64,000 bases of DNA from Cyanophora paradoxa CCMP329 (Eukaryota > Plantae > Glaucophyta). The stretch covers positions 310,001 through 374,000 of the forward strand of contig QPMI01000494.1 in NCBI GenBank assembly GCA_004431415.1, written 5' to 3'. Within the stretch, counting starts at the first letter, position 1; each line of letters opens with the position of its first letter. The translations under genes and the position numbers were made by a program. This document shows positions 6,005-43,200 of this stretch, one piece after another. A model generated the notes under the pieces. The model had not been told where the DNA came from. It saw nothing but the letters and a program-made list of their open reading frames with translations, and did not search any database.

Positions 6005-7283
6005 CGCCCAGTGTTGGGCCTACTAGTAGTTCAACGGTTGGCCCGGCGCCGGCGCGGGCGCCGGCCGGGGCAGCGGCGCCGCGGCGGGGCCGCCGGGCCA
6101 CCAGGCCAAGGGTCGGAACGAAGCGAAGAATGGTCTGATTTCATAGAATACTCACTAGTACATATACAAGTAAATACGTGCCCTAATTAACGAGAGGAGG
6201 CTCCCGGGTACGTAGCGCCCCGGCTAGGGCCCGGCGGGGCCGGGCCCGGGGCCGGGGGCGGGCGGTCTTTGATCTTGGCTCTACAAAGAAGCGGGGAATG
6301 TATTTCAAAGATTTCCTAGAGCGAGGGAGGTCGGGAGAGGGGCCAGGGCCAGCCCCGGCTAGGGCCCGGCGGGGTGCGGGGCGGGGTGCGGGGCCGGGGC
6401 CGGGGCCGGGGCCGGGGGCGGGCCCCGGGAGGCGGGCGGCGCGGAGCTCGAGGCCGTCGAACAGCTCCCAGCAGGCCGCGTCGACGGCGGCGTAACTAAG
6501 GAAAGAATAACTAAGGGTATGCCCCATCGGCCCGGCGGACCTTGGCCGCCCTAATAAAATTAACTCTATATATAACCTTCACCCGTACCTAGGCCTGACA
6601 GCCTAGTTTGTTTGTGATATTTCATAGATTTCCCCCAGGCCGTCGAAGAGCTCCCAGCAGGCCGCGTCGACGGCGGCGGCGACCTCCCCGCCCCCGCCCC
6701 GCTGCTGCACCCAGTTCACCGAGGCCAGCATCTGCGGCAACGTCGACGTCAGCTGGAACAGAAGTACAGTGCTCGTCTTGTTAAAGCTCGCGAGGATGGT
6801 TAAGCTTGTCTTGCCCAACTAATAATTAAAGTGTGATTATATAACGCTTAAGCCAAAACTGAGCTAAACTCACCATGCGGTAGTCGACGGGGAGGTCGAC
6901 GGCCTTGGGGTCCGCGATCCAGACGGGGAATTTGGGGAGGCGCAGCTGGTGGTGCGCGTACTGCAGCTCGTCGTCCCCTGCCGCGCGATCAAATCTAGGG
7001 GGGGGAGGGTGGGGGGGGGTACGGACAGTTCTTGGAGGCGACGTAGGCGGGGGAGAGGAAGAAGAGGAAGGCGCGGCAGAGGTTCATCGCCTCCTGCGAG
7101 CCCTCATTGGTCGACGGAGACGATTCAGTTGGGAGGGGGGGTACATGGCGCACGCCGATCTTGGCCATCCAGCGCTGGCCGGCCTTCAGCTCGCGGTCGA
7201 CCCTGCGAGGAGCGGACGCTCAGCGGCGCAAAAAGGCGTGGCGGGGCGTGGCGGGGCGTGGCCGGGGCCGGGGGAGGGGGCGT

Positions 7284-7324
<41 letters not shown>

Positions 7325-8130
7325 CGGCGCGCCAGACAGCGAAGCCGGCGGCCTCGAGGGCGTCGGCGTACAGGAAGACGACCGCCGCGTCCGCGTGCGC
7401 GTAGCTGCGCTCGCGCTCAACGGTCGGAGGGCTCGTTTCATGAGGGCCCAGCACCTTAGGAAAAGGTCCCAGCGCTTGCCGTCGGCGGCGGCGGCGGCGG
7501 GGCCCGGGGAGCCGTGGCGGGGCGGCGGGGCGGCGGGGGCGGCCAGCGCCGCCGCCTCGGAGAGGATGCGGTGGCGGGCGCCTGCGTGGGCCACGCCCAT
7601 CTCCCGCAGCGCCCCGTCCGTTAGGGCGAGCAGCGCCGGGCCGTCCGTGTACGAAAACGCCGGCGCGAACCTGCGGCCGCGCGCTCAGGTGAGCGGGCGG
7701 GCGGCGTAGGCGTAGGCGGGTGGCGGGAGCTCTAAACTAAAGAATCGCTAAAGTATCGTACGCCCAGGTGAGCGGGCGGGCGGGCGGGCGGCGGGGGCGG
7801 CGGGGGCTGCGCGCGCACTCGGCGAGGGGTCCCCGCGAGCGGATCCACTCGACGACGTGCGCCTCCCTCCACTGCCGCACGTCCGCCTGCGGGGGGAGAG
7901 GCGGTGAGAGGGGCGGGTGGGTGGGAGGCGGGGGCCTGGGCGCACGGGGGCAGGGAGGGCGGCTCGGGAGGCTCGGGCGGCTCGGGGGCGGCGGCCGACG
8001 GCGGCGGCGGAGCGGGGGCGGTGCGGGAGGCTCGGCGGCGGGGCGGGCTCGGGGGGGGACGAGGCCGGCTCGACGAGGCGCTGCTCGCAGCTCGCGAGGG
8101 CGACCAGCAGACCCGACACGGGCCGCGCGT
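6005..8130. repeat. Segmental duplication copy A (SAM-TIR exons, introns and 3' flank)
   Basis: Closely similar to ~25795-27965, including introns and the flank gaacgaagcgaagaatggtctgatttcatagaata. Confidence 0.9.
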
Positions 8131-10037: not shown

Positions 10038-12549
10038 ATGGGCTGCGGCGCCAGCAGCGTTTGCGGGGGCGGGGGAACAGCCCCCCGGTCGCCGGAAGAG
10101 GCGGATAACGATCGAGCTGCAGCTGCCATCAGCAACAGCGGCACACGTGATGGCTCAGTTGCGGGGATCGGTGGTCCGGATCACGCGGTGTCCGCTGAAG
10201 AAGCCGCGAGCGCTGCCAAAGTCGCCGACGCAGCTGCAGCTGCAGTAGAGCAGCGCCCGAGCGGGCTCTACGGCATGTGCGGGCCCGAGGAGCTGATGGT
10301 GATCACGCGGGTCGAGTTCGTGCAGACCGCTGCGCAGCTTGCGGGCCTGCTGCGATCAGAGCGTGTGCGCGCGGCTGCGAGCAAAGATCCAGAGAAGGAA
10401 GTGCCGCCGATGCTGCCGGCGGTCGACGACCTGGCGCGGAGAGGGAACGCAGAGCAAGCGCTGCGGGAGCTCTGCCACGAAGGCGCGTATACGTACACGC
10501 GCGGTCCGGCCCCGAGCCGCGCGACCCGTGCGCAGTTCTACGAGCCTTTACGGACGACGGATCGCTCGCGTTCTCTGCGGACGTTGCGGCCCTCGTCCAC
10601 TCCGGCGACCCCGACCTCTGCCGCGCCGTGCGCTCCGCCCCGCCCCGCCCCGCGGCCGCCCCGCCCCGCGCCTCAGGCGCCGCCCGCCCGCGATCGAGCC
10701 GCGCCTCCGCCGCAGCTCGTGGACGCGCTCCTGCGGAAGGCGAGCAAGGCGATGCTGGCCGACCACGCCGTCCTCTCCGCGCTCGCCTACGTCGCGGGGC
10801 ACCTTCCCCCGGACACGCTCACCGCCTCCGACTGGGCCGCCGTCCTCAAATTCGCATCCGAGCAGGCGAGCGGCCGCGCCGCGCCGCGCCGCCCGCCGGC
10901 GCCACCTGAAGGGGCGCGAACGCGCAGGTTGAGCTGCTGAGCGTGGAGGGGCTGGAGCTGGGCCCGAGCGACGCGGAGGCGCAGGTCGCCCTCGAGCTCA
11001 CCGCCGCCGTGCTCGCCGCCTACGAGGCCGCCTCCAGCGCCGCCTCCAGCGCCCCAGCCCCCGCCGCCCCCGCCCGGCCGCCGCTGCCGCCGCCCCCGCC
11101 TCCACCCCCGCCGACCCCGCCGCTACGGTGGCGGAGGTCGGCGACGGCGCCTCTGCCGCCTCGCCGCCCGCCCCCGACACCGCCTCCACCGCACCGGCCC
11201 CCAAGGTCCGATATCACCCCTTCCCCCCCCCCCCCCCCCCCACCCCCCCCCGCCCCCGCCCCGCCCCGCCTCGTCCCCCCCTTCCCGCCCCCCCTTCACC
11301 CCCCCCCCCCCAACCACCGTTCCCCATTCCTCTCTTATTCTTGCCTCCTTCGAACTTCGCCCCCCCCTCCCTTCAATGACTCCCTGGGACCCACTCCCCC
11401 CCCCCCTCCCCACCCCCCCTCCCCCCCCGACCTCCCGAACCCTCCTCCTCCCCCCTTTTACCCTTGGTCGCCTTCCCCTCGTCACTCCCCTCCTCTTCCC
11501 CCGCCCCCCTGTACCCCCCTGCCCCCCCGCGCCGCGCGCCCTCTTCTCTCTTCCTGAAACTGGCGGTGCGCAGGGAAGCGGCTGGATGTCGACGAGAGGC
11601 GCATTGCGGCGCTGAGCGAGAAGCTGAAGCGGCTGGAGGGCCGCGCGAGGGCAAAGGGGTGGTGGCGGGCGGAGGCTGCGGCGGTGGTGGCGGGGCAGGC
11701 GCTTGCGAGCGTCCGCAGCGGCGGCGAGCGCTTCGGGGACGTCGTCCGCCGGTGCAAGGCGGCCGGTCCGACCCGTCGAGCCTCCCGCACCGTTGCCCCG
11801 CCTCAGCTTCGGCCTCGCAGGTCGGATTCTGAAGAAGCTCTACGCGGCGAGCAAGGTCATCATGGAGGGCGTCTCCTCCATGGGCGCCACGACCGTCATC
11901 GACCTCGTCTTCTGGGCCAAGGCGCGCCGCAGCCGAACCGGGGACCCTGCCGGGCTCGTCGTGGCTAGCGCTGACTGGCGGTCCGGACCGCAGGACATCA
12001 TGAGCGACGAGAAGGGGGGCATACTGGAGGCGGCGCGGGAGATGTGGAACGACGCGCGCATCGTCGTCGGCAAGGGCGCGCATCTGCAGGGCCAGAACGT
12101 CGACCCCTGGTCCGATCCGCCCTCGGTCTTGAACTCGACGAGGGTGCCGAGCTGACGGGCGGGGGCGGCGGCAGGTACGCGCGGGCGCGGCTGCTGGGGT
12201 CGCTGGCGGCGGGCGGGCAGCTGGAGGAGCTGGAGGCTCTGCTGCGGGACGGCGGTGGGGAGGGGCTCGCGGACTGCGCCTCCAGCCGCCAGCTCGCCCT
12301 CGTCCTCGCCTCCGCCCTCGTCCGCGTGCGCGCCCTCCACCCGGCCCCGGCGGACCCCGCACCCGTGGCTGCGTCCGTAACCGAGCTCTGCCGGGGCCCG
12401 GGGCAGGTGGCGGAGGGGCCGAGCCCCACCCAGGCGGCGGCGGCGGCAGGGCTGCTCGAGCGTCTCGCCAGGAAGGCGGGGGAGCTGGGCGGGGCGGACG
12501 CGGCGGAGATCGCGGCGGGGGCGCTCGCGCACGTGGCGCGGCTCGACGA

Positions 12550-12585
<36 letters not shown>

Positions 12586-15500
12586 GGCGCGGACGGCGCT
12601 CCAGCGCTTGGCGGAGTACGCCAAGCGGGAGGGGGCGAAGCTCCGGCGGCGGCGCAGGCGGCGGCCTCGGTCAGCGTGGCGGTCGGCTGCCTCGCCGGCT
12701 TCCGGCACGGGGCGGCGCGCGTCATGGAGAACGGCGTCGGGCTCGTGGAGGATGTGGCCGAGCTCGTCGCCGACGTGCCCGGCCTCGAAGGGGCGGCCGG
12801 CGTGGCCGGCGACCTCGCGGCGGCGGCGCGGCGCGCGAAGGATGGCCGCTTCGTGCAGCGCGCCCTCTCCGCCCTCGCCGCCCCCGAGCGGCTCCTGCAG
12901 CTCGCGTCCGCGCCCTCGCCCGCCGCGCCCTCGGGCCCAGCTCGGACGGCGAGGTCGGCGCCCCCGGGCAAGCTCAAGAAGGCGCCGCCCCTGCGCCCGA
13001 CGCCGATGCGGGCCAGGGTGAGGAACGGCTACCTGGGGCGCGTGCTCCAGAAATACAAAGAGGCGGTGCGCCCACAGTCGTCGACCGCCGGCACAGCCTC
13101 AACCTGCTGAGGGGCGCCGGACGCGGGGCGCGCGGGGCGGGGCAGGTGGAGGCTGCGGGGCAGGTGGTGAAGCGGGCGCACGTCCACGGGCGGGAGCAGG
13201 ACCTGGCGGACCCCGGAGTCCGCCTGCTGCTCTCCGACCTTGCCGTCGATCTCTGGTGCGCCGCCCGCCGCCCCGGCCGCCCGCCCGTCGTCCGCCCCGC
13301 CCGCTGAGCTCGGCTTGGCCGCAGCGGCTCGGCGCCTTTCCGCCGCTGCCCGGAGCTGGTGTGCGCGAGCAGGGCGTTCGTCTTCGTTGCAAGCCCCGTG
13401 ACGGCGCGGGAGGTGACATGCCTCAAGGCCCTCGACGAGGGTGCGCGGGGGCGACCCGCTCGTTTCTAGACTCGCTATTCAATTTTCTGATTTCGCCCGC
13501 GCGAGCTTCGCCTCATGGCGCCCGGGCCGCAGCGATTGAGACGGGACAAGAGGTCTTCCAGTTCTACCTGAACGGGGCGGAGAGCGTCCTCCAGGCGATG
13601 CCCGTCGGCGTCGACATGCGCCTCAGCCGCTTCGACCGCGTGCGGGCGGTCCCTCTCTGCCCTTTGACGCGAGCCGACCGAGCCCCCGCAGTGGCAGCTG
13701 GACGTGGAGGCGCTGCGGAAGGCGGACGTGTACGCCGCTGCCCGGTCGAACAAGAAGGACCCTCTGGACGTGCTTGCGAGCGGCGTGCAGAAGACGTGCC
13801 GCTTCCCCCGAGAGTACGGCAAGCCGGCGGCTGGACAGAAGCAGCTGACGACGCGCTGGTTCGGCGGGGCTGGGGGCTCGAGCTCCGGGCAGCAGCCGTG
13901 GCCGTCTGCTCCCAAGTGGGTTGTCGAGGAGTCCCTGACGGCCGAGTCCGACATTCATGCCCGCGTTTTCTTCGCTCACGCCTTGAATCCGAAGGACAGG
14001 GAGATCGTTCAAACGTTCTCCACTTCATTGCAAAGCATCGCGTCTTGCTGGTGCGCCCGTTGATGATGGATCGATCGCATGCACGCGTGAACGTCCGCGC
14101 TGCTTATCATGACGCGGCTCTGCAGGTCAGAGGCCGAGCATTGGGAGAAGGGCGAGCGCTGGGTCGACTTGGGTACGTCTTCCTTGGGGGCAGGTGTCGC
14201 GCATCGCTAACGTGGAATCCTCACCCCTGTCGCAGTGGCGCGCGCCATCCGCAACTGCACGCATTTCGTCTTCATTGTGTCACCCGCCATCGACGGCTCG
14301 CAGGTCAGTGGCCCTTAATCGATTATTCATATTAATATTGAATATCTTGATGACGTGAGCTCGCGGCTTGGCAGCATATCCAGGAGGAAGTGGCGTACGC
14401 GTGCAGCCAGGACTGCGCTCTGGTCGCCCTGTACCTCAAGCAGCAGGGGAAGGCCGTCAGGAGCTCGTGGGTGGAGGAGCGCCTGGAACGCGCCGCGCCC
14501 GGCCGCGTGCACAAAATCGATGCCGCCATCGACGTCGACCCAATAGACGCGGCACTCAAGCTTGCGAACGCTGTGAAAATTCGAACCCAAGCGATCGCGG
14601 CTCGCTCGACCGCAGCCACAGCCACATACGCAGGCGCAACCGCAGCAGGGCAGCGGGCGAGGGCCCAGGCCGGCCAGATCCAGCCAGTGCGTTGTTCCCC
14701 GACCGGCCATCCCTTGTATTTGACCCTGATCGAGCCTCGGAGGCTCGGAGAGCTGATGCGGGCGCCCAGGCAACTGCACTCGGGTGGACGGAGGCGGATG
14801 TCGAGTACTGGATCCGATCGCACGAGCCCCTCGCGCAGTGCGCCGCCTGCAGCCAGCGCCGGCCACAAATATGTATAATATATACAGTTTAACGCCGTCC
14901 GACGGTCTGTTTTTGAAGCAGATTCGCGAAGCGATTCTCCGTCTTGAAAGGAAGGGGCCTCCTCTCACTCACCGACTCGGCCCTGAAGCAGCTCGGCATC
15001 AACCATGTTGCTACGCGTAAGCGATTCCTGCTCGAGATTGCGGCCTTGTCCAAGGCCGCACTGGAGAAGTGCGACAGGAAGGTGCTCAGAAGCTTTGATC
15101 GTACAGGCGCGGCGATCTATATTATCTGACATGCTCCGTGAATTGCCTGGTCCAGCTGGAACCGCTGTGTTGGACCGAAGAGGACGTCGTGGCCTGGGTC
15201 CGCTTGCAGGGTCCCCTCGCAAAGTGCGCACCCCTGTTTTCTCGGATGCTCCACTCTCCGCTGTTGATTGGCGGGATTTACAGATTTGCCGAACTGTTCA
15301 CGTTCACCGGGGGCCCAGGACTGCTCTCACTTTCCGATGTGGATCTCGAGCGCATGGGCGTGGACAACTTCCCGGCGCGGCAGCGTCTCCTCGAAAAGAT
15401 AGCCGAGCTTGAAGCGAATGCAATCGCACAGTCACTCCACAAGAATGCCAAGCCCGAGACTGACACAGCCGCGGAGTCACGAGTTGTCGAGTTGGTGCGC

Positions 15501-18500
15501 TGGCCCTGCCGTGGCCGTTTAATGCGAGTATTCACCGACATGCACGCCGGCAGGCTCCGGCGCCATCTCCTGCCGAGGTCGATGGCATCAGAGCATCAAT
15601 TAAAAAAGTACGCTTGATCATGATGGATTAATTGAATTTGGATGATTTAGATGCTCTTCAATAAAATTCATGCAATGGATCCGGACAGTTTGCGGCGGAG
15701 GTGGCCGACGAGCTCCGCCAGGACCAGGACCTTGCGCTCTACGTCCCGCCCCGCGCCACTCCGGACCCGAAGCTGCCGTTCAAGGTGGCCCCCGGCCCAA
15801 GTTCCCGGCTCTAAACCTAGGTCTCATGTGTGCACGCGGCGTGATGGTGACTCCACAGCATCATGTGGATCTTCACGAAAAGGCTGTGACGTTCCTTAAG
15901 GCGCTGCGGCCCGGCGCCAATGTCGGCGAAGATGCCGCAGCGAAGCCGAAGTCAAAGCGCGTTCTGTTATTGTTGGGTGGCGCAGGCACATCGAAGAGCA
16001 CATTTGTGCGCTTCTTGGAGCGCGACGTCTGCGAACAATGGGCGGAGTCAGAAGACACAGCAGGCCCACAGCTGCCTGTCGTGGTGCTTGTTTCGCTGCC
16101 GCAGCTCGCCGGCATGGCGGGCGGTGTGCCCAAAGGATCCGGACTGCGGCAGCACGTGGCGGCCAAACTTGGTGTCGCAGAGAAGGCGCTTCCAGCTCTC
16201 CGAGACAGGTATGCATCTCGTTTATGTTAACGGTAGCGGCCGTTTCGTTGACGTGTACGTCAGCATCGGGCTCGTGCTGCTTCTTGATGGATATGACGAG
16301 ATGGGCGTGACGGACGGCATGAACCTGTGGCAGGAGAACGGCGTTTCAGACTGGGCGAGCGGCGCACTTCTCACCTGCCGAACGGAGTTTCTCGCGTCGC
16401 TTCCCGTTGACAAGCCGCACGAGGTGCTTTCTCTTTCCTCTACGATGTTCCGCTTTTCTGAGTGCTATCTGATCATGAGTCTGTCAATACTCTTGATACT
16501 CTCGGGCTATCTGAGTCGCGCCTGGCAGGCCTCTTTCGCACCTGCCGAGAAGGATGGTGAAGCCGATCGCGACGATTCGGCTCTGGTGCAGCTGCACACG
16601 GTCCCCTTCACAAACGACCAGGTGTGCCGGGCGGCGCGGAATTCTACATGCAAACGCAACGATACAGAGTTAGAACCGCTTCTGCGCAGCGGGACAAGTA
16701 CCTGCAGCACTACGTCGAGCGCCACGAGAACGACGAGGCGGCATGGACCTTCGAGCAGTACCAGGTAGCCTTTGCAAAGACGCCGGGCCTGGCTGCCTTT
16801 GCGGAAAACCCTTTCTCCCTGTCGATGGCCGCCCGCGTCCTGCCCACAAAGTCCGTCCTTTGTGCGTCCAACTAAAAGATTCCACACTGACATGTACACG
16901 TGTTGCGTACAGGACGGCAACCGGAGGACGGCTCGGCATGCGGGGCCTTTACCGGCTGTTCTTGCGGGACTGGCTGAGGCGGGAGCTGTATCGGGGCGGC
17001 ACCGAAATCCCGCGGGATGCCACAGGTGCGGTGCTCAAGCCTGCATGTTGCTAGCACTTGCAGAATAGCAAACAGTTGCAATCGGCCGCATGCACAGTCC
17101 AAGAACGAGTGGAGGATGACTTTGTCAAGGAGGGGACAGGGTTGTGCACGCGACTTGCATGTCTTCTTTTCCGCGTGCGCTCGACTTTGGCTTCTCGCAA
17201 TCAGTCGAGCACTGGAATTCCATAAACGTTAAATGCGCAGATGTCAGCCAGCCAAGCAATGATCCCGGACCCACGGGTCCAGAGGCAGCAGAAGACGGGT
17301 GCTGAAGTGAACTCGAAGCCCGTAGCTGCTCCCCCCCCAAGCCCAGAGCAGGGCGCTCTCTGCGCGCTGCTGGGCGACCGTGCATTGCTTCTCGTGCGCA
17401 ACAGCTGTCCGTTGCGGCAGTGGAGGCAGGGCGGCTCGCTTGGCTTCGCGTTTGTGCACAAGACGCTGCAGGAGTTTCTGTCCGCGGAGGCACTCCTTGA
17501 CTCGGTGCGTGAAGCAAAGGGGGCAGCAGGGACCTATAGAGAGAGAACGCCGACGGCAGGCCCTGAGGGTGGAGGGCTGTTGTGCAGATAGTCGATTGAG
17601 TTATAATTAGGGCTGTACTGATCGTGACAACTGTCTGTGCACAGTTGTCGAGCAAGGCTACTCCGAGTAATTATAACGGCATCGACATCACATTGCACAC
17701 ACGGTATGCCATTCAATTGCTTGATTGAGCGTCCGATGGACAAGCTTACAGTGACATCGACAACACGCAGGAGCATTGTGGGGGATACGACGCTTGTCCG
17801 ATTTCTGGCGGAGGCTGTCCAGCACGAGCCCCAGGCCATCGTTGCGGACGCTCTCGTGCGGATCATCGAATTGAGTCGGCCGCGGGATTCTTCTGGGAAG
17901 GCAATCGAGAATGAAGCACCAGAGGTAGCCCCGGAGGTTGTTGCAGCGGCGAACGCAGCGACCATCCTCGTCGCTGGTGCGTGCAATTGTTTCATTGATA
18001 GTTCGTGAGTGTGTGCCCTGCCGAGTGAGGTTCTTGCGATGGCCCCTGCAGGCCACTACTCGCTGGCGGGCCGCAACTTGCGGGGTGTGCGTATACCAAG
18101 AGCCAATCTGTGGCGACTGGAAGCAGCAGGTGCAGATCTTCAAGAGGCGGATCTGCGACACTGTGCCGTAAACGAGGCATGCCTGTCGAGTGTGGATCTG
18201 AGAGGTGCACGCATGGACAACTGCTTTGTGATGCAGCATCCGGCATTGCTGCATAAGAGCGCCGTTCGCGCCGTTGCCTGGACACCGGTGCGTGCAGATA
18301 TCCCGCTGCAGCGGTATTGGTGTGCAAGGGAGGTGCAGCAGGGTGGGGTAATCATAGGACAAGCGAGTCTCAGGGTTGTGGGGTCGCTGACAGAAGCACG
18401 GGTGTGCGGCCTGCAGGACAGGAAGTGGATCGTCTCGGGGAGCGATGACAACCTGGTGCGGGTGTGGGACGCAGAGACAGGGACAGAGCTGAGGAAGTTG

Positions 18501-21500
18501 GAAGGCCACAAGGACAACATCATCTCAGTGGCTGTACATGTCTCCACAGTGCGTGAGGGAGGGGCGGGGGTGAGATGTGGTGGAGGACATGCATCTGGGC
18601 GTGCGAAGCTTAAGGCGATGGGTCTGGCCCTGGGCCGTGATAGCAAGCAGTCCCGACACCTAAAGAGTCGCAATCGAGCACGAGCATGGTTTGGGGCCGT
18701 GAAGGCACTGACAGAAGCACGGGGGTGCGGCCCGCAGGATGGGAAGTGGATCGTCTCAGGGAGCAATGACAAGTCGTTGCAGGTGTGGGACACTGAGACA
18801 TGAATCGTCTCGGGGAGCAATGACAAGTCGGTGCAGGTGTGGGACGCTGAGACAGGGGCGGGTCTGCGGAAGCTGCAAGGCCACACAGGCTGGGTAACGT
18901 CCGTGGTGGTTTCAGCGGTGCGCAAGCCCTGAAAGGAAGGGTGGTGACACAGGCCTAGGGGCCCGAATGATGTGGCCCAGTGGGATGGGACTGCATGCCC
19001 GGTGGGGTCCGGTTTGTGCACATTTTAGAGCCACAAGTTTTCTGATGAGGGCGCGGGGCACGGCTTGCAGGACGGAAAGCGGATCATCTCGGGGAGCAGT
19101 GACAAGTCGGTGCGCGTGTGGGAGATGGAGACAGGGGCGGAGATGCGGAAGCTGGAAGGCCACACGCGTAATGTCAACTCGGTGGCGGTTTCGAAGGTGC
19201 GCATGGGAAGGGCTGCAGCGGGGCATCCCAGAAGATGGGCAGTAGGGCCTGCAAAGGCGATGAGGCCGGCGTGGGGCTGGGATAGCTGGTGGAGCGCCTC
19301 CATCTAGACTAGATGGATTTCACGGTCTAGAGAGAGCGAGCTCAAGTTTTGGGGCTGTGGGGTCGCTGACAGAGAGCGGGGGCTTGGCTCGCAGGACGGG
19401 AAGCGGATTGTCTCGGGGAGCGACGACAAGTCGGTGCGGGTGTGGGACATGGAGACAGGGGCGGAGCTGCGGAAGCTTGAAGGCCATACGGGCTGTGTAC
19501 ACTCGGTCACGGTGTCGGAGGTGCGCAAGGGAAAGTTGGGGGCGGGGCGGCTTGGAAGACGAGCTCCAGGTCTTGTCAATAGATGGGAGCGGTGCGGCTT
19601 TTGATTGGTGTGATGCCCAAATAGCAGGCTGAATGGTTCTGGCAACGCTAAGTGGGGTCCAGGGTAGTCACACTGAGTGAGGTTTAGAGGAGCTGTCCAG
19701 TAATGCGGGCGCGGGGCGCGGCTTACAGCTGTTGAGCTGCAGGACGGGAAGAAAATCATCTCCGGGAGTTCTATCTACGACGGGTTCCGAGGAGACAACA
19801 CGCTGCGGATGTGGGATGCGGAGACAGGGGTGGAGCTGCTGCAGCTGCAGGGCCACACGGGCTCTGTCAGCTCTGTGGCAGTGTCAGCGGTGCGTGATCA
19901 TGAGCTTGAGAGAGGCCCGGGGGGGGGGGGAGGGGGGGGGAGGGGGGGGAGGGGGGGGGAGGGGGGGAGGGGGGGGAGCGGTGGCCTGGCCATGGCCTGG
20001 AGGACGTGCAGCGGCACCATCGGATTGCCAAGAGGATGGAGTTGGCATGGAGCTGTGATAGTTGTAGCAGAGGAGTTTCAATTCGGTGATGCAGAGAGGG
20101 TCTAGGGCGAGCATGATCTAGCTATACATTATAGGACACATATAGGGCCGTGCACATGAGGACACTGACAGGGGCACGGGGGCATTATGCACAGGATGGG
20201 AAGCGGATCATCTCGGGGAGCACGGACAAGTCGGTGCGGGTGTGGGATGCGGAGACGGGGGTAGAGCTGCGGCAGCTGCAGGGCCACAAAGACTCGGTCA
20301 ACTCGGTGGCACTTTCAATGGTGCGCAAGGGAGGGGCGGGAGCGGGGCGGCCCAGAGGACGTGCATGAGCCGCTGAACAGGGTGGACTTGCAAAAGGGGA
20401 TGAAATTAATATTGGCTTGGGCTGCAATAGATGTAGCAGAGCTGTGAGCAGTTTCTGCAATGTCGGCACCAGGATGCCTGATGGGCCTGGGGTTCAAGGG
20501 CGAGCAAGTCTCAGGGTTGTGCACATGCACATGAGGACGCTGACCGGGGTGCGGGGGCATGACACACAGGACGGGAAGTGGATCATCTCGGGGAGCAACG
20601 ACAAGTCGGTGCAGGTGTGGGACATGGAGACAGGGGCGGAGCTGCGGCAGCTGCAGGGCCACAGAGACTTGGTCAACTCGGTGGCACTTTCAGCGGTGCG
20701 CGAGGGACGGGCGGGGGCAGGGTGGCCCGGAGGACGTACATGTTCATGTGCAGGGGACTTACAAAGGGGATGAAATTGGCTTGGGCTGCAATAGAGTCTG
20801 GGAGAACGAGATTTGGGGCTGTGCACTTGAGGGCGCTGACGAGGGCATGGCGGCATGACGCATGCGCACAGGACGGGAAGCGGATCGCCTCAGGGAGCAC
20901 GGACAACTCAGTGCGGGTGTGGGATGCGGAGACAGGGGCGGAGCTGCTACAGCTGCAAGGCCACATCTTCTGGGTCTCCTCGGTGGCAATTTCAGCGGTG
21001 CGCAAGAGCGGGGGGTGCGGGGAAAAGGGAGAAGGGGAAAGGGAGGGGAAGGGGGGGAGGGAGGTAAGGGGCCGGGGGGGGGGGGGGGGGGGAGGGAGGT
21101 AAGGGCCGGGGGGGAGGGAGGTAAGGGGCCCGGGGGGGGGGGGGGGGGGGGGCATGAGCCAAGCCGGCTCGAGCCGGACTTAGGCACCGGCAGCTCGAGC
21201 CAAGGCCAGCCGAGACGCTCGAGGGGAACAGCAAGACAGCAAGGCCTGCTCAAGCTGGGTGGGGCATTGTAAGGGGCGAGCCGGCTTGAGATGCTGTCTA
21301 GCGCGGATATTAATTTAGATTTATTATGAATATATCGAATTATATACGACCGGGACTAAGTACCCCCCTCCTTGAGCCTGCTGGCAATTCGGGCTCAAGC
21401 TAAGCCCCACCCCTTTCGATATCTCACAATACAGCGCTAGCAGTGCATATTAAGGCGATAAAGTTGGCAGGGGGCTGCTAGCATGTGCTGCAACTAGCGT

Positions 21501-23437
21501 GTGCAGGCCCTCTGAGCAAGCAAGTTTCAGGGACTTGAATGCACTGACGGGGCACGGGCGCGCTTCACACAGGATGGAAAGCGGATCGTCTCGGGGAGCA
21601 TAGACCACTCGGTGCGGGTGTGGGATGCAGAGACAGGGGCGGAGCTGCTGCAGCTGCGAGGTGAACTGGCCATGGGCTCCATCCGCTCGGTGGCTCTGTC
21701 AACGGTGCGTGATGGAAGGGCAGGGGTGGGGTGGCCCAGGGAATATTAATGTGCAGTGCGGCTTGTGAAGAGGCCTAGGATGGGGCCCGGCGCCTGGGAG
21801 GGCTGCAATGAGGGGTGCAAATTGAAAAGTTTCCGTTGACACCCAACGGGGTCCAGGGCAAGCGAGTCTCAGGGTTGTGAGGGCTCTGACAGGGGCTCGG
21901 GGGCGTGGTGCACAGGATGGGAAGCGGATCATCTCAGGGAGCGACAACGAGTTGGTGCGGGTGTGGGACACGGAGACAGGAGCAGAGCTGTGGAAGCTGG
22001 AAGGCCACATGGGCTCTGTATACTCCGTGGCGATTTCGGCTGTGCGCAAGGGAGGGACGGGGGTGGGGCGGTCTGGAGGACGTGCTGCAGGGCCTACCGA
22101 GTTCCAGATCTAGAGTCATTGGGCCAGCGTGAGGCGAAGTGTACGATAGCGGGGGGAGTGTTTTTGGCAACACTGGGCAGTTATAATTACCAGGGTCGGA
22201 ACAAGCAAGCATGTTTCATGGCTGTTATCAAAGCACTGACTGGGCCCCCGGGACGTGGGTGCATTGCTGCAGGACGGAAAGTGGATCATCTCGGGGAGCA
22301 GTGACAAGTCGGTGCGGGTGTGGGACATGGAGACAGGGGCGGAGCTGCGGAAGCTGGAAGGCCATACGGGCTGTGTACACTCGGTGGCAGTTTCGAAGGT
22401 GCGCATGGGAAGGGCTGGATCCGGAGCAGAGCAGTCCAGAAGACGGGCAGTGGGGCCTGTAAAGGCAATGAGGCCGGCGTGGGGCTGGGATAGCTGGTGG
22501 AGTGCTTCCGTCTAAACTAGATGGGTTTGATGGTCTAGAGAGAGAGAGAGAGAGAGAGGGAGCGAGGTTTGGGGCTGTGGGGTTGCTGACAGAGAGCGGG
22601 GGCTTGGCTCGCAGGACGGGAAGCGGATTTTCTCGGGGAGCGACGACGAATCGGTGCGGGTGTGGGACATGGAGACAGGGAAAGAGCTGCGGAAGCTGGA
22701 AGGCCACACAGACAGAGTCACGTCTGTGATGGTTTCGGCGGTGCGCATGGCCCAGCGGGAAGGGCTGGAGCAGGGCATCCCAGAGGTCGGGCAGTGGGGC
22801 CTGCAATGACAATATTAATGAGGCCGGCGTGGGGCTGGGATAGCTGGCAGAGCACTTCTTGCGACTCGGAAATTTTGAGGGGGTCTGGCATGGGGCCAAC
22901 GTGTTTAGGATGGTTCTGACGGGGGCACGGGGGCATGGCGCACAGGATGGGAAGCGGATCGTCTCGGCAGGCGGGGGCAAATCTGTGATCATCTGGGATG
23001 TGGAGACGGGAGAAGAGCTGCTGCAGCTGGAAGGCCACGGGCACGTGGGCTGGGTCTGCTCGGTGGCAGTGTCAATGGTGCATGTGGGAGGGAGCTAGGG
23101 CGGGACGGCCTAGAGGGCGTGCAGCGGGGCCCGCGGCCTGCAAAGGCAATGGCACAAGCCTATTCCTATGTATCCCTTCAGAGACACGTACACATAACGG
23201 GGCCCGACGGTCCAGGGGAGCTTCCGGCGACGCCCAACGGGGTCCAGGGCAAGCGAGTCTCAGGGTTGTGAGGCTCGAGCTCTGACAGGGGCTTGGGGGC
23301 GTGGTGCACAGGATGGGAAGCGGATCATCTCGGGGAGCAACAACAATTCGGTGCGGGTGTGGGATGCGGAGACAGGGGCGGAGCTGCTGCAGCTGCAAGG
23401 CCACACGGACTCTGTCACCTCAGTGGCGGTGCTGGCG
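10038..23437 (+). CDS. NLR-like STAND protein NLR1: N-acylation motif, helical/ARM-like region, TIR, SAM, SAM, NACHT NTPase, pentapeptide repeats, 14 WD40 exons (3' end unresolved)
   Basis: Starts MGCGASS. TIR at 13962-14580: RVFFAHALNPKDREIVQTFSTSLQSIASCW|SEAEHWEKGERWVDLV|ARAIRNCTHFVFIVSPAIDGSQ|HIQEEVAYA. SAMs at 14770-15081 and 15156-~15420. Walker A LLLLGGAGTSKST (~15976), Walker B LVLLLDGYDE (~16270), then LLTCR, NPFSLSMA, FVHKTLQEFL, AAANAATILV, pentapeptide LAGRNLRGVRIPRANLWRLEAAGADLQEADL, and WD40 exons at 18417-23437. Confidence 0.9.
18417..23437 (+). repeat. Array of 14 highly similar phase-0 WD40 exons of NLR1
   Basis: Exons 18417-18548, 18738-18917, 19071-19196, 19395-19520, 19743-19889, 20195-20320, 20570-20695, 20872-20997, 21573-21704, 21916-22041, 22273-22398, 22615-22740, 22946-23077, 23312-23437; each runs cag|GAY...|gtgc and is a multiple of 3 long. 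Confidence 0.95.
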
Positions 23438-25794
23438 GTGCGCGAGGGAGGGGGGTGGGAGTGGGAAGACGTGCGGCGAGATTATTTCAATAAAACGCTG
23501 ACCGATGAGAGCAGAATAAAGTTTTTGCGCGATACGCTTCGGGCGCCCAGAAAGCGTGGACCCTTCGAGTCGAACGGGGGGCTCTGTCTGTTCAGGAAGT
23601 CCTGGAGGGGGATGAGGCGTGGGCCCAGGGTTCCGGGCAGGCGGAATTGGTCGACGAGGATGGGACACATCCACTGCCTTTCCACTGGAATGGGCCCCTG
23701 CACGCATCTGCTGCCCTTCCAGTGCGCCCGCAACCGCCCCCATTGGACAGGCTGGGGCCGCCCCCATTTCAAGTTTGACAGAAGCGGCTGCAGGGCGGCG
23801 GGACGCTCTTTGCCATCGCCAGCCCGGCGGGCGTTTCCGTTGAGCGTGTCCCGGTGCGGCCGGCACCCTCAGCATGGCCCATAAATTCAGCATACCCTGA
23901 GCGGAAGCCCTCCGCAGGCCTTCCGCTGCACGCGGCGCATCCAGCAGACGGCAAGCCTGGAGGCTCAGGGGGCAAAGGTCCGCAGTCGCCCCCTGGCGCC
24001 AAAATCTTCCAGTCGGCCGCCCTCTCGAGCTCAGAGCCGCCATGGACGTGCCGCAGATGGATGCGGCGACGTCGATGGAGCCGCGCCTGCGTCGGCTGCT
24101 GCTGCAGCTTGGCGCCGTCAATGTCGAGGAGAGCGCCCCGCAGCCCGCCCCCGAGTAACTGGGGAGAGCTAACGTTCACTTCTCAACGGAGGCGCGGCGT
24201 CATAACTTATTTCTTTTCAGATGTATCCCTGCATATATATCCTGCAATTCAGTGTGTGTTTGCATGGCTGTTGTGATGGGCCCCTCTAGCAACATAATAA
24301 TAATAGTATGCCTTCAGCTGCAGATTCGGTTCGAATTCAATTTATTGGCCTGTGGCCAGCTGCAGTACGTATACGCGAACGCATATACTGGCCGTGGGGG
24401 AAGGAGGATGCTTTTTGTGGAATTACTTCCAAACTGCTTCCATTAAGCACTAGTACTCGCGTGATGGAGCGTGCAAGGGGCCCCAAGATTGCTTAAGTTG
24501 CCACGCGCGTATTTGTTTTTGATGAATTACCGGCCACAGTTTCAAGATCTAGACATCAGCACTGCGGGGGTTGTCCAAGGGGCACAGGGACAAAGAAACA
24601 AAATTACAAAGACAAGAGCACGAATAACGACAAGACATAGAGCCAAAATCGACAATAAAGAAGGAAAAACACAGAGACAGATCGAGAAGAGACGATAATT
24701 AAAATAAGAAACCGAGACCGAGCAGATCTAGTAACAGATCTAGATGACAATAGTACTAGAGATTCCATCAACAACTGAGGGACCGGAACTGAGGAGGTGA
24801 AGCAGGACAATGCAAAAGAGCGGATCATTAAAGCCGGCCGGCGCCGGGGCGGGCAGTCGAACTGCAAATGACGACGAACTACAGGTCCGGATCCAGCACG
24901 AGAACAAGTCCTAAAACTCGGCGAACTCCAGAACAAGAACAACTCCAGAACTCCGAACTCCGAACCAGCACGAGAACAAGCTTAAGACAAGTCCGGCACG
25001 AGAATCCGACTCGGCGAACCAGACCGAACTAAACTACAAGACGGAGATCTAGAACGCCGGTGCCGGCGGAATACGATCAGGGAAGCAGAAGACGAAGCGA
25101 GAGGCGGCGCCGGCGGTCGGGTACCAATTGCAAGAACAAGGGCCGGAGGGTCCGGCCCCGCAAACCGCCGGAGGGAACCAGAAGGAGACGCAGGCTCGGC
25201 AAGCCGGCGACGGGTGCGACCACGAGTCCGGGCAAAGATCGGGAGAGGGCCCGGGAGCAGGGCCAGGAGAAGTCAAGCCCGGCGAGAAATCTGACCCGGA
25301 ACCGGAACCCAGCGAACGGCGACGACGAAGAGGCCCCCGGAGAGCCAAGACGAGCTATCGGGCAAAGCACTGACAGCCGGAGTCAAGCAAGGCGGAGAAA
25401 GTACCCCGCACACAGGAGCCGCTAAGCAGGCGGAGAGTCCAGGGCCGAACAGGACCACAAGAGTTCAGATCTAGAGACCCAACGACGTCGATGGGGACGC
25501 GGCGGAGGCCTAGGGAATTGATGGATCTCTCGTCACGGTATTGATTGAAAATTTTAGAGGAGCAAAGAGTGTGCTTATTTGATACTGTTTAAAAATTTTG
25601 AATACTCACGCGTAGCGTAGGCGCGTAGCGCCTTGAGCTCGGCGAGATTTAGATAGGTTTTGGACCGTTTTTTGCGTGAAACACGACGTACCCCCCCGCC
25701 ACTGGCGGCCACTGAGTGGGGTGCCAGTGGGGGGGGGCCACCGACTCAGTGGGGTCGGACCGCCACTACGCCCACCCCTAGTCCCGCCCACGGC

Positions 25795-27175
25795 GCCCAG
25801 TGTTAGGCCTAGTTCAACGGTTGGCCCGGCGCCAGCGCGGGGCGCCGGCCGGGGCAGCGGCACCGCGGCGGGGCCGCCGGGCCACCAGGCCAAGGGTCTG
25901 AACGAAGCGAAGAATGGTCTGATTTCATAGAATAGTCACTAGTACACATGCAAGTTAATCCTTGCCCTAATAAAAAAGAGGAGGCTACCGGGTACGTAGC
26001 GCCCCGGCTAGGGCCCGGCGGGGCCAGGGCCGGGGCCGGGGGCGGGCCCCGGGAGGCGGGCGGCGCGGAGGCCGTCGAAGAGCTCCCAGCAGGCGGCGTC
26101 GACGGCGGCGGCGACCTCCCCGCCCCGCTGCTGCACCCAGTTCACCGAGGCCAGCATCTGTGCGCGCGCCGTCGACGTCAGCCGCAGAAGTAGTACAGTG
26201 CTCGTCTTGTTGAAGCTCGCGAGGATGGTTGAGTTTGTCGTGCCCAAGTAATAATTAAAGTGTGATTAAAAGTGCCTAAGCCAAAACTGAGCCAAACTCG
26301 CCATGCGGTAGTCGACGGGGAGGTCGACGGCCTTGGGGTCGGCGATCCAGACGGGGAACTTGGGGAGGCGCAGCTGGTGGTGCGCGTACTGCAGCTCGTC
26401 GTCGCCTGCCGCGCGATCAAATCTGTGGGGGGGGGGGGGGGGGGGGCGGGGGGGGATGGGAGGGAGTACGGACAGTTCTTGGAGGCGACGTAGGCGGGGG
26501 AGAGGAAGAAGAGGAAGGCGCAGCAGAGGTTCATCGCCTCCTGCGCGCCCTCATCGATCGACGGAGACGATTCAATTGGGGGAGGGGGTACACGGCGCAC
26601 GCCGATCTTGGCCATCCAGCGCTGGCCCGCCTTCAGCTCGCGGTCGACCCTGCCGAGAGCGGACGCTCAGCGGCGCGAGGACAACGGGGCCGGAGGGGGG
26701 AGGGGGGGGGCGCGCCAGACCGCGAAGCCAGCCGCCTCGAGGGCGTCGGCGTACAGGAAGACGACCGCCGCGTCCGCGTGCGCGTAGCTGCGAACGAAGG
26801 TGTTTGTGGGGGGAGGCAAGGGGCAAGGGGTAGCGGGCACCTCAGGAAGAGGTCCCAGCGCTTGCCGTCGGCGGCGGCGGCGGGGCCCGGGGCGCCGTGG
26901 CGGGGCGGCGGTGCGGCGGGGGAGGCCAGTGCCGCCGCCTCCGAGAGGATGCGGTGGCGGGCGCCGGCGTGGGCCACGCCCATCTCCCGCAGCGCGCCGT
27001 CCGTTAGGGCGAGCAGCGCCGGGCCGTTCGTGTACGAAAACGCCGGCGCGAACCTGCGGCCGCGCGCTCAGGTGAGCGGGCGGGCGGCGTAGGCGTAGGC
27101 GGGTGGCGGGAGCTCTAAACTAAAGAATCGCGAAAGTATCGTACGCCCAGGTGAGCGGGCGGGCGTCGTGGGCGG

Positions 27176-27208
<33 letters not shown>

Positions 27209-27965
27209 GGCGGTGCACTCGGCGAGGGGTCCCCGCGAGCGGATCCACTCGACGACGTGTGCTCCTTCCACTGCCGCACGTCCGCCTGCGGGGGGGGGGG
27301 GGGGGAGGGGAGGGGGGGGGAGCGGGCGGTGAAAAGGGCGGATGGCGGGGGCTCCGCTGGGCGCACGCACGGGGGCAGAGAGGGCGGCTTGGGCGGCTCG
27401 GGTGCGGGATGGAGGCCGGCGGCGGAGGAACGGAGGGCGGGGCGGGGGGCTCGGCGGCGGGGCGGGCTCGGGGGGTACGAGGCCGGCGGCTCGGGGGCCT
27501 CGGCTTGCGCGGGGGGCTCGGGAGGGGGCTCGGGGGCGGGAGAGGGGACCCGCGGGGAGCGGGGGCGGCTGGCAGGCGGGGCGGGGGCCCAGGGGGGTAC
27601 GGAGATGGGCCAGGCCTCGCCGTCCTCCTCCTCGTCGGGGGGCGGCTGGGCCGGCGGCTCGTCGGGGAGGGTCCGACCCAGGTCCGCGTGCCGCGAGAGG
27701 ACCTGGGTGGGGTACAGGGGTCAGAGGGGGTACATACGGGGGTACAAGAGGTACAACAGGGGTGCGCGCCTGGAGGGAAAGGGCGCCGGAGCGGTGGAGG
27801 ACGGCGAGGGCGGCTTCGGCGCGGCCGTAGCGGCCGAAGCGGAGTCCCAGAGGCGGGTCGTCGGCCCCGCCGCCGGGCCGCCCGGAATCGACGAGGCGCC
27901 GCTCGCAGTAGAGTCGGACCTCGCCGCTCGCGAGGGCGACCAGCAGGCCCCACACGGGCCGCGCG
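25795..27965. repeat. Segmental duplication copy B (SAM-TIR exons, introns and 3' flank)
   Basis: Closely similar to 6005-8130 in the same orientation; copy A lacks most of the ~27480-27890 segment. Confidence 0.9.
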
Positions 27966-40200: not shown

Positions 40201-43200
40201 TCGACGCCGCCCTCGACTCGTTCGCAGCCACCGGCACCGCGCCCTGTGCTGGCAGCACCGATCGCCGCGTGCTCCTGCTCACTGGTGGGGCTTTTTAGCC
40301 GACCTCCTGAAATCCCTTCTGCTGACCTACGCCCTGCCCTTGCAGGCGACTCTGGGTGCAGCAAGACGACGAGCCTGCGCCAGCTCCACCGGCGACTGCT
40401 GGAGCGGTGGAGGCCGGGCGTCCCCTTTCCCGTCTTCGTCTCCCTGCCCGTGGTCACGGCGTTGGGCTCGAGCCTCGTCGACAAGCTCGTCGATGCGACG
40501 GGCCTGCAGGAGGACGATCGGGATCGCGAGCTGAAGCAAGAGCTTAGGCAGAGGTGCGCAGGCAGCTCCCCCCGCCGATCCATATATACCCGCTTGATCC
40601 GCAGAAGTCCATGCTTGTGCTGAGTCCGCCGCCAGGGTCAAGCTGCTTGTGCTGCTGGACGGCTACGATGAGGTATGCGCCCGTGCGGATCCTGACGCAA
40701 ATGCGCCGCACCACGGGTTTGATTCCCAGTCTTGCAGGCCCGGCTGAGCCACGCCTTACACTACCTTTACCCGAAGCTCAGCTCGTGGGCCGCCCGCGTC
40801 GTCGTGGCCTGCCGCGCCCAGTACCTGCCGAGCCTCGGCATGGATCACAAGGTTCGAATTAATTACAAATCTACAGTTCCCGACGTTCAACCCCCTGCCG
40901 TAGAGTTACTTCTTGCTGGAGCAATCGGATGATTCGAGCCAGCTCTGCGAGGCATGGACTTGCTCGTTCAACCAGGACCAGATCGGGGCATACGTGCAGC
41001 AGTGGCTCGGCGTCTACCCAGACCCCGAGCACGACTTCGACTGGTACATGAAGCAGATCAACACGATCCTCGGCCTGCTCGACATCATCCGCACGCCCTT
41101 CGTCCTGTCAATCGCCTGCAAGGAGCTTCCATCGATTGGCGCTAAGCTGTGCGCCATGTGGCTGTGCCTTCGTATTGTTTCGAGAGGCTGAGACGGGTCT
41201 GGGTGGCTGCAGGATGGAGAAGCAACATGATGGCTCAAGCTTCGCGCGGGTCCTGATGCGCGATGTGTACAACGCGTTCGTCACCGGGCTATTCAGACGG
41301 GAGGAACAAAAGCGCGCAGAACAGAAGTGCTTCGCAAACTTCGCTGTCAACTGCCGCAAGTTCTGCCGATCTGTCGCCGTTCTGATGGACAAGCAGGTGC
41401 GCGCCTTGGACTTACGGCAGTGCCATGCTTTGCTTACGACCCACACGCTTGATTAATATTGGACGGCAGGCCACGACGGTCTTGCAAGTAGACATGCAGC
41501 TCTCCTTTGGTGTGCTGAATTCAAAGAAGCTGGGCGCGGCGGGTGCAGACGCGGCCGATCCCGCTGCGAAGGCCGCAGCGCTGCTCACTAGCGAACGGAG
41601 CGCGGAATTTCTCAGAGCCGCTCCAATCAGACCGACGTGGGAGGAAGACGGAAAAATCTCGTACAGCTTCATACACGCTTCCCTCAAGGAGTACTTTGTC
41701 GCCGACAGCATTCTCCCCTACCTCGATGCCCGCCTCGCAGCGCAGCCGGCCGCGGGATCCCAGCGGCGCAGATCCGCCATGTGCGGCATCTCTTTAGCTT
41801 CGTGATGATAATCTCGTCTTCCTCTTCCGCTTAGCGCTGGTCTCTTTTAATTGTCGCAGGTGGAATGTGGGTGGAGCGGACGTGGTGGATGGGCTCGGCC
41901 GCCGGCTGCTGGTGGACGACTCGGCCATCGTCCAGTTCCTTGCCGACCGTGCCCGCTCCGAGCCGCCCTTCGCAGAGGTTCGAAGCTGCCGCGGCCGTGT
42001 GCGACGCCTCTTTCCTCGCCCTGTCTGATTCGATCACATTGACAGGCACTCTGGGCGTGCCTGCTGCAGTCCGCTAACGGCGGTTCGCCCATCGCAGCTG
42101 CCAATGCGATGACTGTCCTGAATCACGGTCGGCACTGGCCCCATATGCTCTAGGACGCGTTCCCTGCACTAATATATATCCGCAAAGCGGGCGCATCGTT
42201 TGCGGGGAAGGAGCTGCGTGGCATTCGGGCGCCTGGGGCCGACCTGTTCCGACTCGAGGCGGCTGGGGCGGACCTGCGCGGCGCGGACCTCAGCGGAGCG
42301 ATTCTGGACGAGGCGAACGTGGCGGGGGCTGACCTGCGGGGCGCAAACCTCGACAACTGTCACCTCAGCGTTTGGCCTGCGTGCCAGCTTGGGTACGCAA
42401 CGCGCTGTGTCGCATTCTCGTCGGTGCGTCTGCCTTGGGTATATATGGGGCTCATAATGATGTCTAGGTCTAGGGTTTCATGACTGTGGGCTGACAAGCG
42501 TAAGACTGCTCTCTGGTTTCACGCTCTGCATTCCAGGATGGGCGCTCGGTCGTTTCGGGTTGCGAAGATGGGACGATCTGCATTGTAGATGCCGAGAGTA
42601 GATCCTTAAGCTTCAAGGCGAGCTTTAAAACTGTGGAATCCGTCGCATTCTCTGCAGTGTGTCTTTGCTTTGAAAATGCAAATGACCGCTTGGCGCCTGC
42701 TGAACGTGTCACAGGACGGCAAGAAGCTGGCGTGGGGCGATGCAGGTGGAGTCGTGGGCCTGTTCACATGGCCGTGGGATGTGCCGGGAGGGATGCGCGT
42801 CCCTCTAAAGCTGAAGGGGCACATGAGGGTTGTTACCTCCGTGCTTTTCTCGCCGGTGCGAAGAAGAATTTGGAAAAGCTTGAAAAGTTATATAATGTTG
42901 TATTTCACTGACGCTTCTCCCGGCAAGTAGGACGGTTCGACTCTGGCGTCGGGCAGCACTGACGGGACCGTGCGGCTCTGGAGCGCAGCAGATGGCACGC
43001 TGCTTCGCGTTCTCGAGGGGCGTGGGGACACTGTCCGCTCGATAGCGATCTCGCCGGTGCGAACAACTGCAATTCAAGCTTAAGGCACATGCATATGAGA
43101 ATGGACCTGTCGGTGACGGTTGCGGTTCGCTCAGGATGGCAAGATGCTTGCGTCTTGCTCTGATTCGGAGTCTTTGCGACTGTGGAGAGTGGCGGACGGG

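Follow-up and report, generated by a model that had tools for sequence, protein, structure and literature searches.

How an effector block comes to lie in the middle of one receptor gene and to be missing from a relative nearby is the question raised by a 64,000-nucleotide (nt) window of the Cyanophora paradoxa genome, the window being the whole stretch of DNA that was analyzed and the frame of all coordinates given here. Two NLR-type genes are concerned: NLR1, on the + strand at about 10038-23440, and NLR2, located 14 kb downstream. TIR-STAND receptors have been described in plants, bacteria and some animals, and SARM1 is a known case of the SAM-SAM-TIR combination. The original prediction placed a TIR-SAM-SAM cassette inside NLR1, between a helical region and the NACHT module, and viewed its absence from NLR2 as modular gain or loss within one NLR family. 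The analysis described here indicates that NLR1 is probably one long, intron-rich gene of the STAND/NLR type, from a family in which the TIR pair and the SAM pair came or went on separate occasions.

The joined exons of NLR1 were taken from a public gene model, and the remaining analyses of this gene were run exon by exon. The stop-free P-loop exon (15859-16206), used as a query against 1.84 billion representative proteins, returned 15 matches, headed by P0001 (99% identity, 2009 amino acids), which exact look-up identified as EukProt EP00741 Cyanophora paradoxa tig00020902_g15007.t1. Thirteen of the other 14 were further C. paradoxa gene models, and the last was a low-complexity ENA protein. 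A proposed link to proteins of Mortierellaceae fungi and their Mycoavidus endosymbionts is thus unsupported by this search, and no search was aimed at that link. Two additional searches yielded 27 C. paradoxa family members; the only relatives found outside Cyanophora are far too distant to serve as an outgroup. P0001 maps exactly onto the + strand at 10275-19601, and all 18 junctions between 12176 and 16423 have GT-AG borders and leave the reading frame intact; most of them use GTGCGC as the local donor. Across the window, G+C content is 54-76% per 2-kb bin and short GT-AG introns are abundant.

The order of domains in NLR1 is likely to be an acylation motif, an ARM-like helical region, two TIR domains (TIR-A and TIR-B), two SAM domains (SAM1 and SAM2), NACHT, a short pentapeptide linker and a WD40 array. 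A domain-profile check of this architecture on P0001 gave Pfam matches to TIR_2, twice to SAM_1/SAM_2, and to ARM_5 and WD40. A TIR and two SAMs do lie between the helical region and NACHT, as had been proposed, but the cassette was drawn too short: a probable further TIR, TIR-A, precedes these domains, and the block is TIR-A-TIR-B-SAM-SAM, at 13146-15494.

TIR-B (13947-14575, + strand) is divided into pieces at 13947-14050, 14126-14172, 14236-14303 and 14375 to about 14575, the last exon extending to 14686. Introns had been predicted near 14051, 14173 and 14304, and P0001 contains precisely these as GT-AG introns: a phase-2 intron at 14051-14125 that interrupts the Trp codon of SCW, a phase-1 intron at 14173-14235 and a phase-0 intron at 14304-14374. 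The predicted split over four exons was likewise upheld, as the four pieces are colinear in alignment with the TIRs of seven paralogs, and a hidden Markov model (HMM) built from paralogs only matches each of them, with expectation values (E) of 2e-3, 2e-5, 1e-9 and 2e-16. In P0001, residues 860-1100 score 36.8 bits against Pfam TIR_2 (PF13676; cut-off 28), and the paralogs score 35.8-76.6 bits. Single TIR-B exons from the window are too short for Pfam and gave no match, and the identification of TIR-B therefore rests on P0001 and the paralog profiles. The paralog-TIR profile also finds solved TIR domains, namely Cat1 (2.8e-5), TIR-STING (3e-4), AbTIR and MyD88. The motif SQxCxEExAYA holds an invariant EE, and in alignment its second Glu falls on the catalytic Glu of TIR NAD+-cleaving enzymes (NADases), the DEL Glu of Cat1. 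In NLR1 this residue is the second E of HIQEEVAYA (codon 14387-14389, + strand), and the EE is invariant in the two TIR-pair-bearing gene types described below as b and c. By its motif, TIR-B thus appears to keep the catalytic Glu and to be competent as an NADase, and it is probably active.

TIR-A (13146-13830, + strand) comprises exons at 13146-13255, 13325-13440, 13533-13639 and 13692 to about 13830, as supported by alignment with seven paralogs, hhalign, and AlphaFold2 with Foldseek. It is conserved in the four cassette-bearing genes and is also found N-terminally in the TIR-NACHT genes P0003, P0004, P0019 and P0020. When aligned with TIR-B by hhalign, it matches with 87% probability (E 4e-6) over 57 columns, with strand C through helix D in register, and has Ala where TIR-B has the catalytic Glu. 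Its AlphaFold2 model (predicted local distance difference test, pLDDT, 81.8; predicted template modeling score, pTM, 0.80) shows strand-helix alternation, and the best Foldseek matches of this model in the PDB, which are weak (E about 1e-2, template modeling score 0.5-0.58), are nearly all TIR domains (SNC1, RUN1, TLR15, Mal and Cat1). No Pfam match to TIR-A was obtained on P0001, nor any PDB match by sequence profile. TIR-A is read, from the model and the alignments, as a diverged and non-catalytic TIR. The peptide KRAHVHGRE, which had been considered as a duplicate of the pre-NACHT YVPP motif, was rejected as such; it is the first strand of TIR-A and is common to the TIR-TIR-NACHT genes.

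The SAM pair follows on the + strand. SAM1 (14770-15081) is encoded by exons 14770-14837 and 14922-15081, separated by a phase-2 intron between PLAQ and FA, while SAM2 (15156-15494) consists of exons 15156-15223 and 15284-15494, with a phase-2 intron between PLAK and FA; the introns flanking each domain are of phase 0. On P0001, Pfam SAM_1 (PF00536) scores 56.3 bits over two stretches and SAM_2 (PF07647) scores 50.5 bits (E 4e-15 and 2e-13), and the second exon of each SAM, taken alone from the window, still reaches SAM_1 or SAM_2 at 25.7 and 27.7 bits. The two SAMs are 40% identical to each other, and each is 57-65% identical to its counterpart in P0002. One supposed insertion footprint was discarded: a second-frame stretch at 14904-14954 resembles 40062-40112 of NLR2 (11 of 17 residues, 24 bits by tblastx), but the true frame there, after the acceptor at 14921, is FAKRFSVLKGRG, the NLR2 stretch is mostly intron, and the score is at the noise level of a very noisy tblastx comparison.

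Phase-0 introns bound the whole block (13146-15494), the TIR pair (13146-14686) and each SAM (14770-15081 and 15156-15494). Consequently, the block, the TIR pair or a single SAM can be gained or removed without a shift of the reading frame.

The sequence between the block and the NACHT module bears on whether they belong to one gene. Two small linker exons (15554-15607 and 15689-15784, + strand) carry a pre-NACHT motif (KFA...LALYVPP) that is conserved in P0017, P0002 and P0018. In the general form K[FY]A...LALYVPP, the motif precedes the P-loop in every family member, whatever domain lies upstream. The linker exons are about 90% conserved in P0017, and the same domain order recurs in four paralogs on four contigs. 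It could be argued that NLR1 joins two genes in error, a helical-TIR-TIR-SAM-SAM gene and a separate NACHT-WD40 gene, since its gene model is computational and faulty in places and C. paradoxa genes are packed densely end to end (PMC6704402). However, the SAM2 exon (ending at 15494), the two linker exons and the P-loop exon (starting at 15859) are separated by GT-AG introns of a mere 59, 81 and 74 nt, all of phase 0, and from 15554 up to the P-loop no Met occurs. The linker holds a motif that stands behind the N-terminal domain in all family members, and the spliced junctions from SAM2 through the linker into NACHT are conserved in P0017, P0002 and P0018. From these sequence features, a split of NLR1 into two genes is unlikely, and we would assign it only a very small probability.

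The NACHT module (15859-16423, + strand) begins with the P-loop exon (15859-16208, GGAGTSKST) and continues with the Walker B exon (16264-16423, LLLDGYDE). The AlphaFold2 model of a paralog segment, P0002:1140-1560 (pLDDT 80.4), matches NLRC4, NLRP9, NLRP7, NOD2 and NLRP3 by Foldseek at E 3e-10 to 1e-6 over 420-480 columns; the modeled protein is the paralog and not NLR1 itself. A PDB sequence-profile search with the NACHT alignment returned generic P-loop proteins only. Together with the Walker B sequence, the paralog's modeled fold supports a divergent NACHT-type module of the order NBD-HD1-WHD-HD2. In every family member, Walker A has the form GxxGxSK[ST], with Ser replacing the usual Gly before Lys (for example at 15976-16002 and 40345-40371). 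In the ESM Atlas, the clusters closest to the TIR-to-NACHT part consist of bacterial TIR proteins with nSTAND or NACHT, none with a SAM, and are of use as a lead only.

At its N-terminus, NLR1 probably begins with MGCGASS (10038-10058, + strand), a motif of the N-myristoylation/palmitoylation type, and MG(C) starts are also found in P0025, P0026, P0015, P0027 and P0007. An acylated, helical N-terminus with shared intron positions had been predicted for both NLR1 and NLR2, and this held: an MG start, a nearby Cys and a small residue at position 6 are present, at the motif level, in MGCGASS (10038) and in MGCGCGK of NLR2 (37245), and five introns of the helical region agree in position and phase between the two genes. 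These lie after CR[AK] (phase 0), after EQ (phase 0), at KAA-G/V (phase 1), after W[AL]K (phase 0) and in the Trp codon before [YF]ARARLLG (phase 2). The helical region of NLR1 (10038-13065, + strand), traced over several exons with Pfam, blastp and tblastn, matches Pfam ARM_5 (PF23948) at residues 56-150 of P0001 with 33.8 bits (cut-off 27); in the relatives P0018, P0011 and P0027, ARM_5 stays below cut-off. Up to about 12340 the region is common to NLR2 and other helical-NACHT genes, and the part from 12340 to 13065 (about 230 residues) is conserved only among the four cassette-bearing genes. At the other end of NLR1, the pentapeptide linker (about 18054-18290) and the WD40 array occupy 18054-23440 on the + strand. 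Two WD40 units, at 19066-19527 and 22268-22747, are 85% identical in DNA over 480 bases, which fits an array with one exon per blade.

NLR2, also analyzed exon by exon, extends over 37245-45560 on the + strand, with the MGCGCGK start at 37245, helical exons at 38246-40026, NACHT exons at 40080-42132, pentapeptide repeats at 42178-42384 and WD40 exons beyond. As predicted, it has the NACHT and pentapeptide regions in common with NLR1: its NACHT-to-pentapeptide exons match positions 6 to 594 of the family profile in colinear order. The predicted absence of the block was also confirmed, in that profiles of TIR-A, TIR-B and SAM, run against all stop-free pieces on both strands, gave no match at E≤1 between 37 and 46.5 kb. 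Extended over the whole window, again on both strands, the scan matched only NLR1, two minus-strand SAM-TIR genes and one piece at 49701-49826, whose weak TIR-B match was dismissed as spurious. Where the cassette would lie, NLR2 appears to have a phase-0 intron of 53 nt (40027-40079, + strand) that separates the last of its helical exons from the pre-NACHT exon, a splice read from the sequence and a putative 'empty' counterpart of the cassette site. Upstream of the block, confident similarity between the two genes stops at about 12340 in NLR1 and at 39528 in NLR2.

The two genes do not, however, form a close pair with and without the block. By summed per-exon scores, the closest relative of NLR2 is P0027 in both the helical region (285 bits) and the NACHT region (388 bits, the next being 233), with a tie in the pentapeptide region (92 bits for P0027, 93 for P0015), and NLR1 is unremarkable among the other relatives. 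P0027 has the GDSGCSKTT P-loop of NLR2, and its long branch in the NACHT tree is well removed from NLR1. On these comparisons NLR1 and NLR2 are distant paralogs, and the history of the block has to be read from the whole family.

Architectures were assigned from Pfam searches of the pre-NACHT parts and by direct reading. Type a, helical-NACHT, comprises P0009, P0011, P0014, P0015, P0022-P0028 and NLR2; type b, TIR-A-TIR-B-NACHT, comprises P0003, P0004, P0019 and P0020; type c, helical-TIR-A-TIR-B-SAM-SAM-NACHT, comprises P0001, P0002, P0017 and P0018; and type t, in which a different TIR (YD[IL]FISHKQS) is followed by NACHT, comprises P0007, P0010 and P0012. The helical domain is missing from type b and replaced in type t. 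The predicted internal position of the TIR is correct for NLR1, but it does not represent an unusual insertion of a TIR: in the sister TIR-TIR-NACHT genes the TIR pair is N-terminal, and thus its 'internal' position in NLR1 is an effect of the presence of the helical domain.

An unrooted maximum-likelihood tree of the NACHT-to-pentapeptide region (22 rows, 653 columns; P0006, P0008, P0013, P0016, P0021 and P0026 were omitted as fragments, duplicates, a non-family protein, or for want of a recognizable P-loop) resolves type c as a clade (100/100), and types b and c with the fragment P0005 form a starred clade (98/93). Type a is scattered over several deep lineages. The five architecture labels require at least five changes on this tree, and with the phase-0 boundaries this sustains the idea of modular change within one NLR family, though not the view of NLR1 and NLR2 as a close pair, P0027 being the kin of NLR2. 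In the NACHT region, NLR1 is 59-69% identical to P0002, P0017 and P0018. In a tree of the helical region, type c again forms a clade (87/99), a starred branch divides it from the P0011 and P0015 groups, and P0027, P0009 and the NLR2 exons are unresolved near its base. The helical tree is broadly congruent with the NACHT tree and shows no sign that the helical domain was recently transferred. On these sequence trees, the TIR pair probably changed state once, on the branch to types b and c, and the SAM pair once, on the branch to type c.

Within the family, P0011, P0012 and P0025 (tig00021070 g17805, g17934 and g17936, two of the three adjacent) have almost identical NACHT regions (branch lengths 0.06-0.09). 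The N-terminus of P0012 is the other TIR, as in P0007 and P0010, and those of P0011 and P0025 are helical. Unless it is an artefact of the gene models, this may mean that the N-termini were recently swapped or that the NACHT-WD40 part underwent gene conversion.

As to direction, any root placed among the type a lineages makes the TIR pair and the SAM pair gains, and makes the missing helical domain of type b a loss. It could instead be that the ancestor of the whole family was helical-TIR-TIR-SAM-SAM-NACHT and that NLR2-type genes lost the block. A single branch of the unrooted tree divides bearers of the TIR pair from non-bearers; if the root lay there or further out, one loss would cost no more than one gain, and the phase-0 boundaries permit a clean deletion. 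Yet the plain helical-NACHT genes constitute several deep lineages and the bearers one clade, and any root among the plain genes, the midpoint root included, makes the block a gain. Furthermore, the profile scan found no TIR or SAM relic in NLR2, and the SAM pair is restricted to one clade of four genes. A gain of the block is accordingly the favored and rather likely direction, while its loss from NLR2-type genes is improbable, if less so than the merging of two genes considered above.

Several points weigh against the proposed history of NLR1. First, the unrooted tree does not distinguish gain from loss, and the monophyly of type b is weakly supported (46/72). Second, some of the family architectures could be artefacts of truncated gene models. 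Third, no member tried reaches the gathering score of Pfam NACHT (PF05729), the scores being 14-26 bits against 26.7. Finally, the joining of exons in NLR1 rests on an Augustus/BRAKER1 prediction that is faulty in at least four places. P0001 starts at 10275, 79 codons downstream of the in-frame MGCGASS at 10038. A false in-frame 'intron' of 54 nt (13946-13999) deletes ARVFFAHA, the opening strand of TIR-B that every paralog retains, and another of 99 nt (16006-16104) deletes a conserved stretch of NACHT. In addition, a proline-rich GC tract (about 11050-11480) is translated, and the model ends early, after four WD40 units. RNA-derived fragments were not recovered by a word-index protein search with the SAM2 open reading frame or by an exact contig look-up of P0001, both of which came back empty. 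The C. paradoxa models were made with BRAKER1/Augustus trained on RNA-seq data, and their authors caution that manual curation is needed (PMC6704402).

SAM-TIR genes lie on either side of NLR1. On the minus strand, the SAM and TIR exons of a SAM-TIR gene lie at 26472-27262, with a SAM intron and a Trp-codon TIR intron as in NLR1, and the module recurs at 7025-7871 in a second copy, whose DNA is 84-89% identical to that at 26.1-27.5 kb. The duplicated segment that holds these exons measures 1.4 kb (6637-8069 and 26069-27487, minus strand), and its two copies flank NLR1 in the same orientation. Both copies have, as had been claimed for them, a phase-2 intron within a Trp codon (FAVW) that matches the one in SCW of NLR1, but with a GC donor. 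The intron of their SAM, between PLAE and FA in phase 2, is the same as that between PLA[QK] and FA in the SAMs of NLR1. At several conserved intron positions, GC donors (G/GCGCGCC) stand where a paralog has GT: at 10866 and 11922 in NLR1, at 38351 in NLR2, and at 26718 and about 7333 (minus strand) in the SAM-TIR genes; GC-AG introns seem common in these genes.

These neighbors raise the possibility that the block was recently copied from them into NLR1. SAM-TIR modules stand on both sides of the gene, their SAM intron and Trp-codon TIR intron occur in NLR1 as well, and the SAMs of NLR1 are about 46% identical to the neighbors' SAM. Against this, the order of domains is opposite (TIR-SAM-SAM in NLR1, SAM-TIR in the neighbors), relative to NLR1 their second TIR intron is shifted by two bases and their third by about three codons, and the neighbors' TIR exons match the TIR-B profile at E 0.3-0.9 per exon, a remote likeness. 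It is instead the TIRs of the type b TIR-TIR-NACHT genes that carry nearly all TIR-B motifs (SCW, RWVD, ARA(I/V)RNCTH and SQxCxEExAYA). Moreover, four paralogs on other contigs carry the block, and the divergence of SAM1 from SAM2 predates the separation of those genes. Recent copying from the flanking genes is therefore highly improbable. Since the SAM introns match those of the SAM-TIR genes while TIR-B resembles the type b TIRs, the SAMs are assigned, on sequence, to one C. paradoxa SAM lineage serving both gene families, and the TIR pair to the NLR family itself. The common internal SAM intron points to exon shuffling inside the genome.

By analogy with TIR-NLRs and SARM1, we infer a scheme for the function of NLR1. 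The variable WD40 array would sense a ligand and thereby release oligomerization of NACHT, and the NACHT oligomers would cluster the TIR-B domains into NAD+-cleaving sites or have them synthesize a signal nucleotide. The tandem SAMs might provide a second oligomerization interface beside the TIRs, as in SARM1, TIR-A could act as a non-catalytic partner or brake, and the MGCG start might attach the protein to a membrane.

A bolder reading would make TIR-TIR-SAM-SAM a mobile effector cassette that still moves among NLRs by exon shuffling or unequal crossing-over, is perhaps alternatively spliced, and with the ARM-like domain forms a permuted, SARM1-like NADase triggered by NACHT. We regard this as doubtful; if it is true, a unicellular alga diversifies its receptors at the effector end as well as at the WD40 sensor end. 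With NLR1 read, as above, as one gene whose TIR and SAM pairs changed at different times, a single protein unites all these parts in a glaucophyte, a member of a group that branches deep within the plant lineage, and one family in one genome displays the intermediates: plain, TIR-TIR only, and TIR-TIR-SAM-SAM. The intron phases show how effector blocks of NLRs can come and go in frame, a concrete case of effector assembly, and with its naturally occurring variants the family lends itself to the question of what tandem SAMs and a presumably dead TIR contribute to a TIR-NLR.

The architecture of NLR1 is a recombination of well-known modules. In the searched literature no paper describes it or connects Cyanophora with TIR and NACHT, and the C. 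paradoxa genome paper (PMC6704402) mentions neither TIR, NACHT nor WD40. Compared with the NACHT NLRs of animals and fungi (NLRC4, NLRP3 and NOD2), the family has a like NBD-HD1-WHD-HD2 fold (Foldseek E about 1e-10, paralog model), and its C-terminal WD40 sensor array recalls the fungal NACHT-WD40 proteins of the HET-E type. The NLR1 family differs from these in a Pfam NACHT score below cut-off, the Walker A form GxxGxSK[ST] and a pentapeptide linker before WD40, and NLR1 in having its effector domains behind an ARM-like domain and not at the N-terminus. Plant TNLs and bacterial TIR-STAND proteins, like NLR1, combine TIR, a STAND NTPase and a repeat sensor, but they have a single N-terminal TIR and no SAM, and plant TNLs use NB-ARC and LRR. 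SARM1, an ARM-SAM-SAM-TIR NADase, contains the same parts as NLR1, namely an ARM-like helical domain, tandem SAMs and a TIR with its Glu. NLR1 does not have the SARM1 order of modules; its own is permuted (ARM-TIR-TIR-SAM-SAM), with an extra, presumably dead TIR and a fusion to NACHT-WD40, and the likeness seen here is one of parts. The nearest counterparts are P0002, P0017 and P0018, which have the same TIR-TIR-SAM-SAM-NACHT-pentapeptide-WD40 order, and from whose loci that of NLR1 differs in holding a plain helical-NACHT paralog on the same contig.

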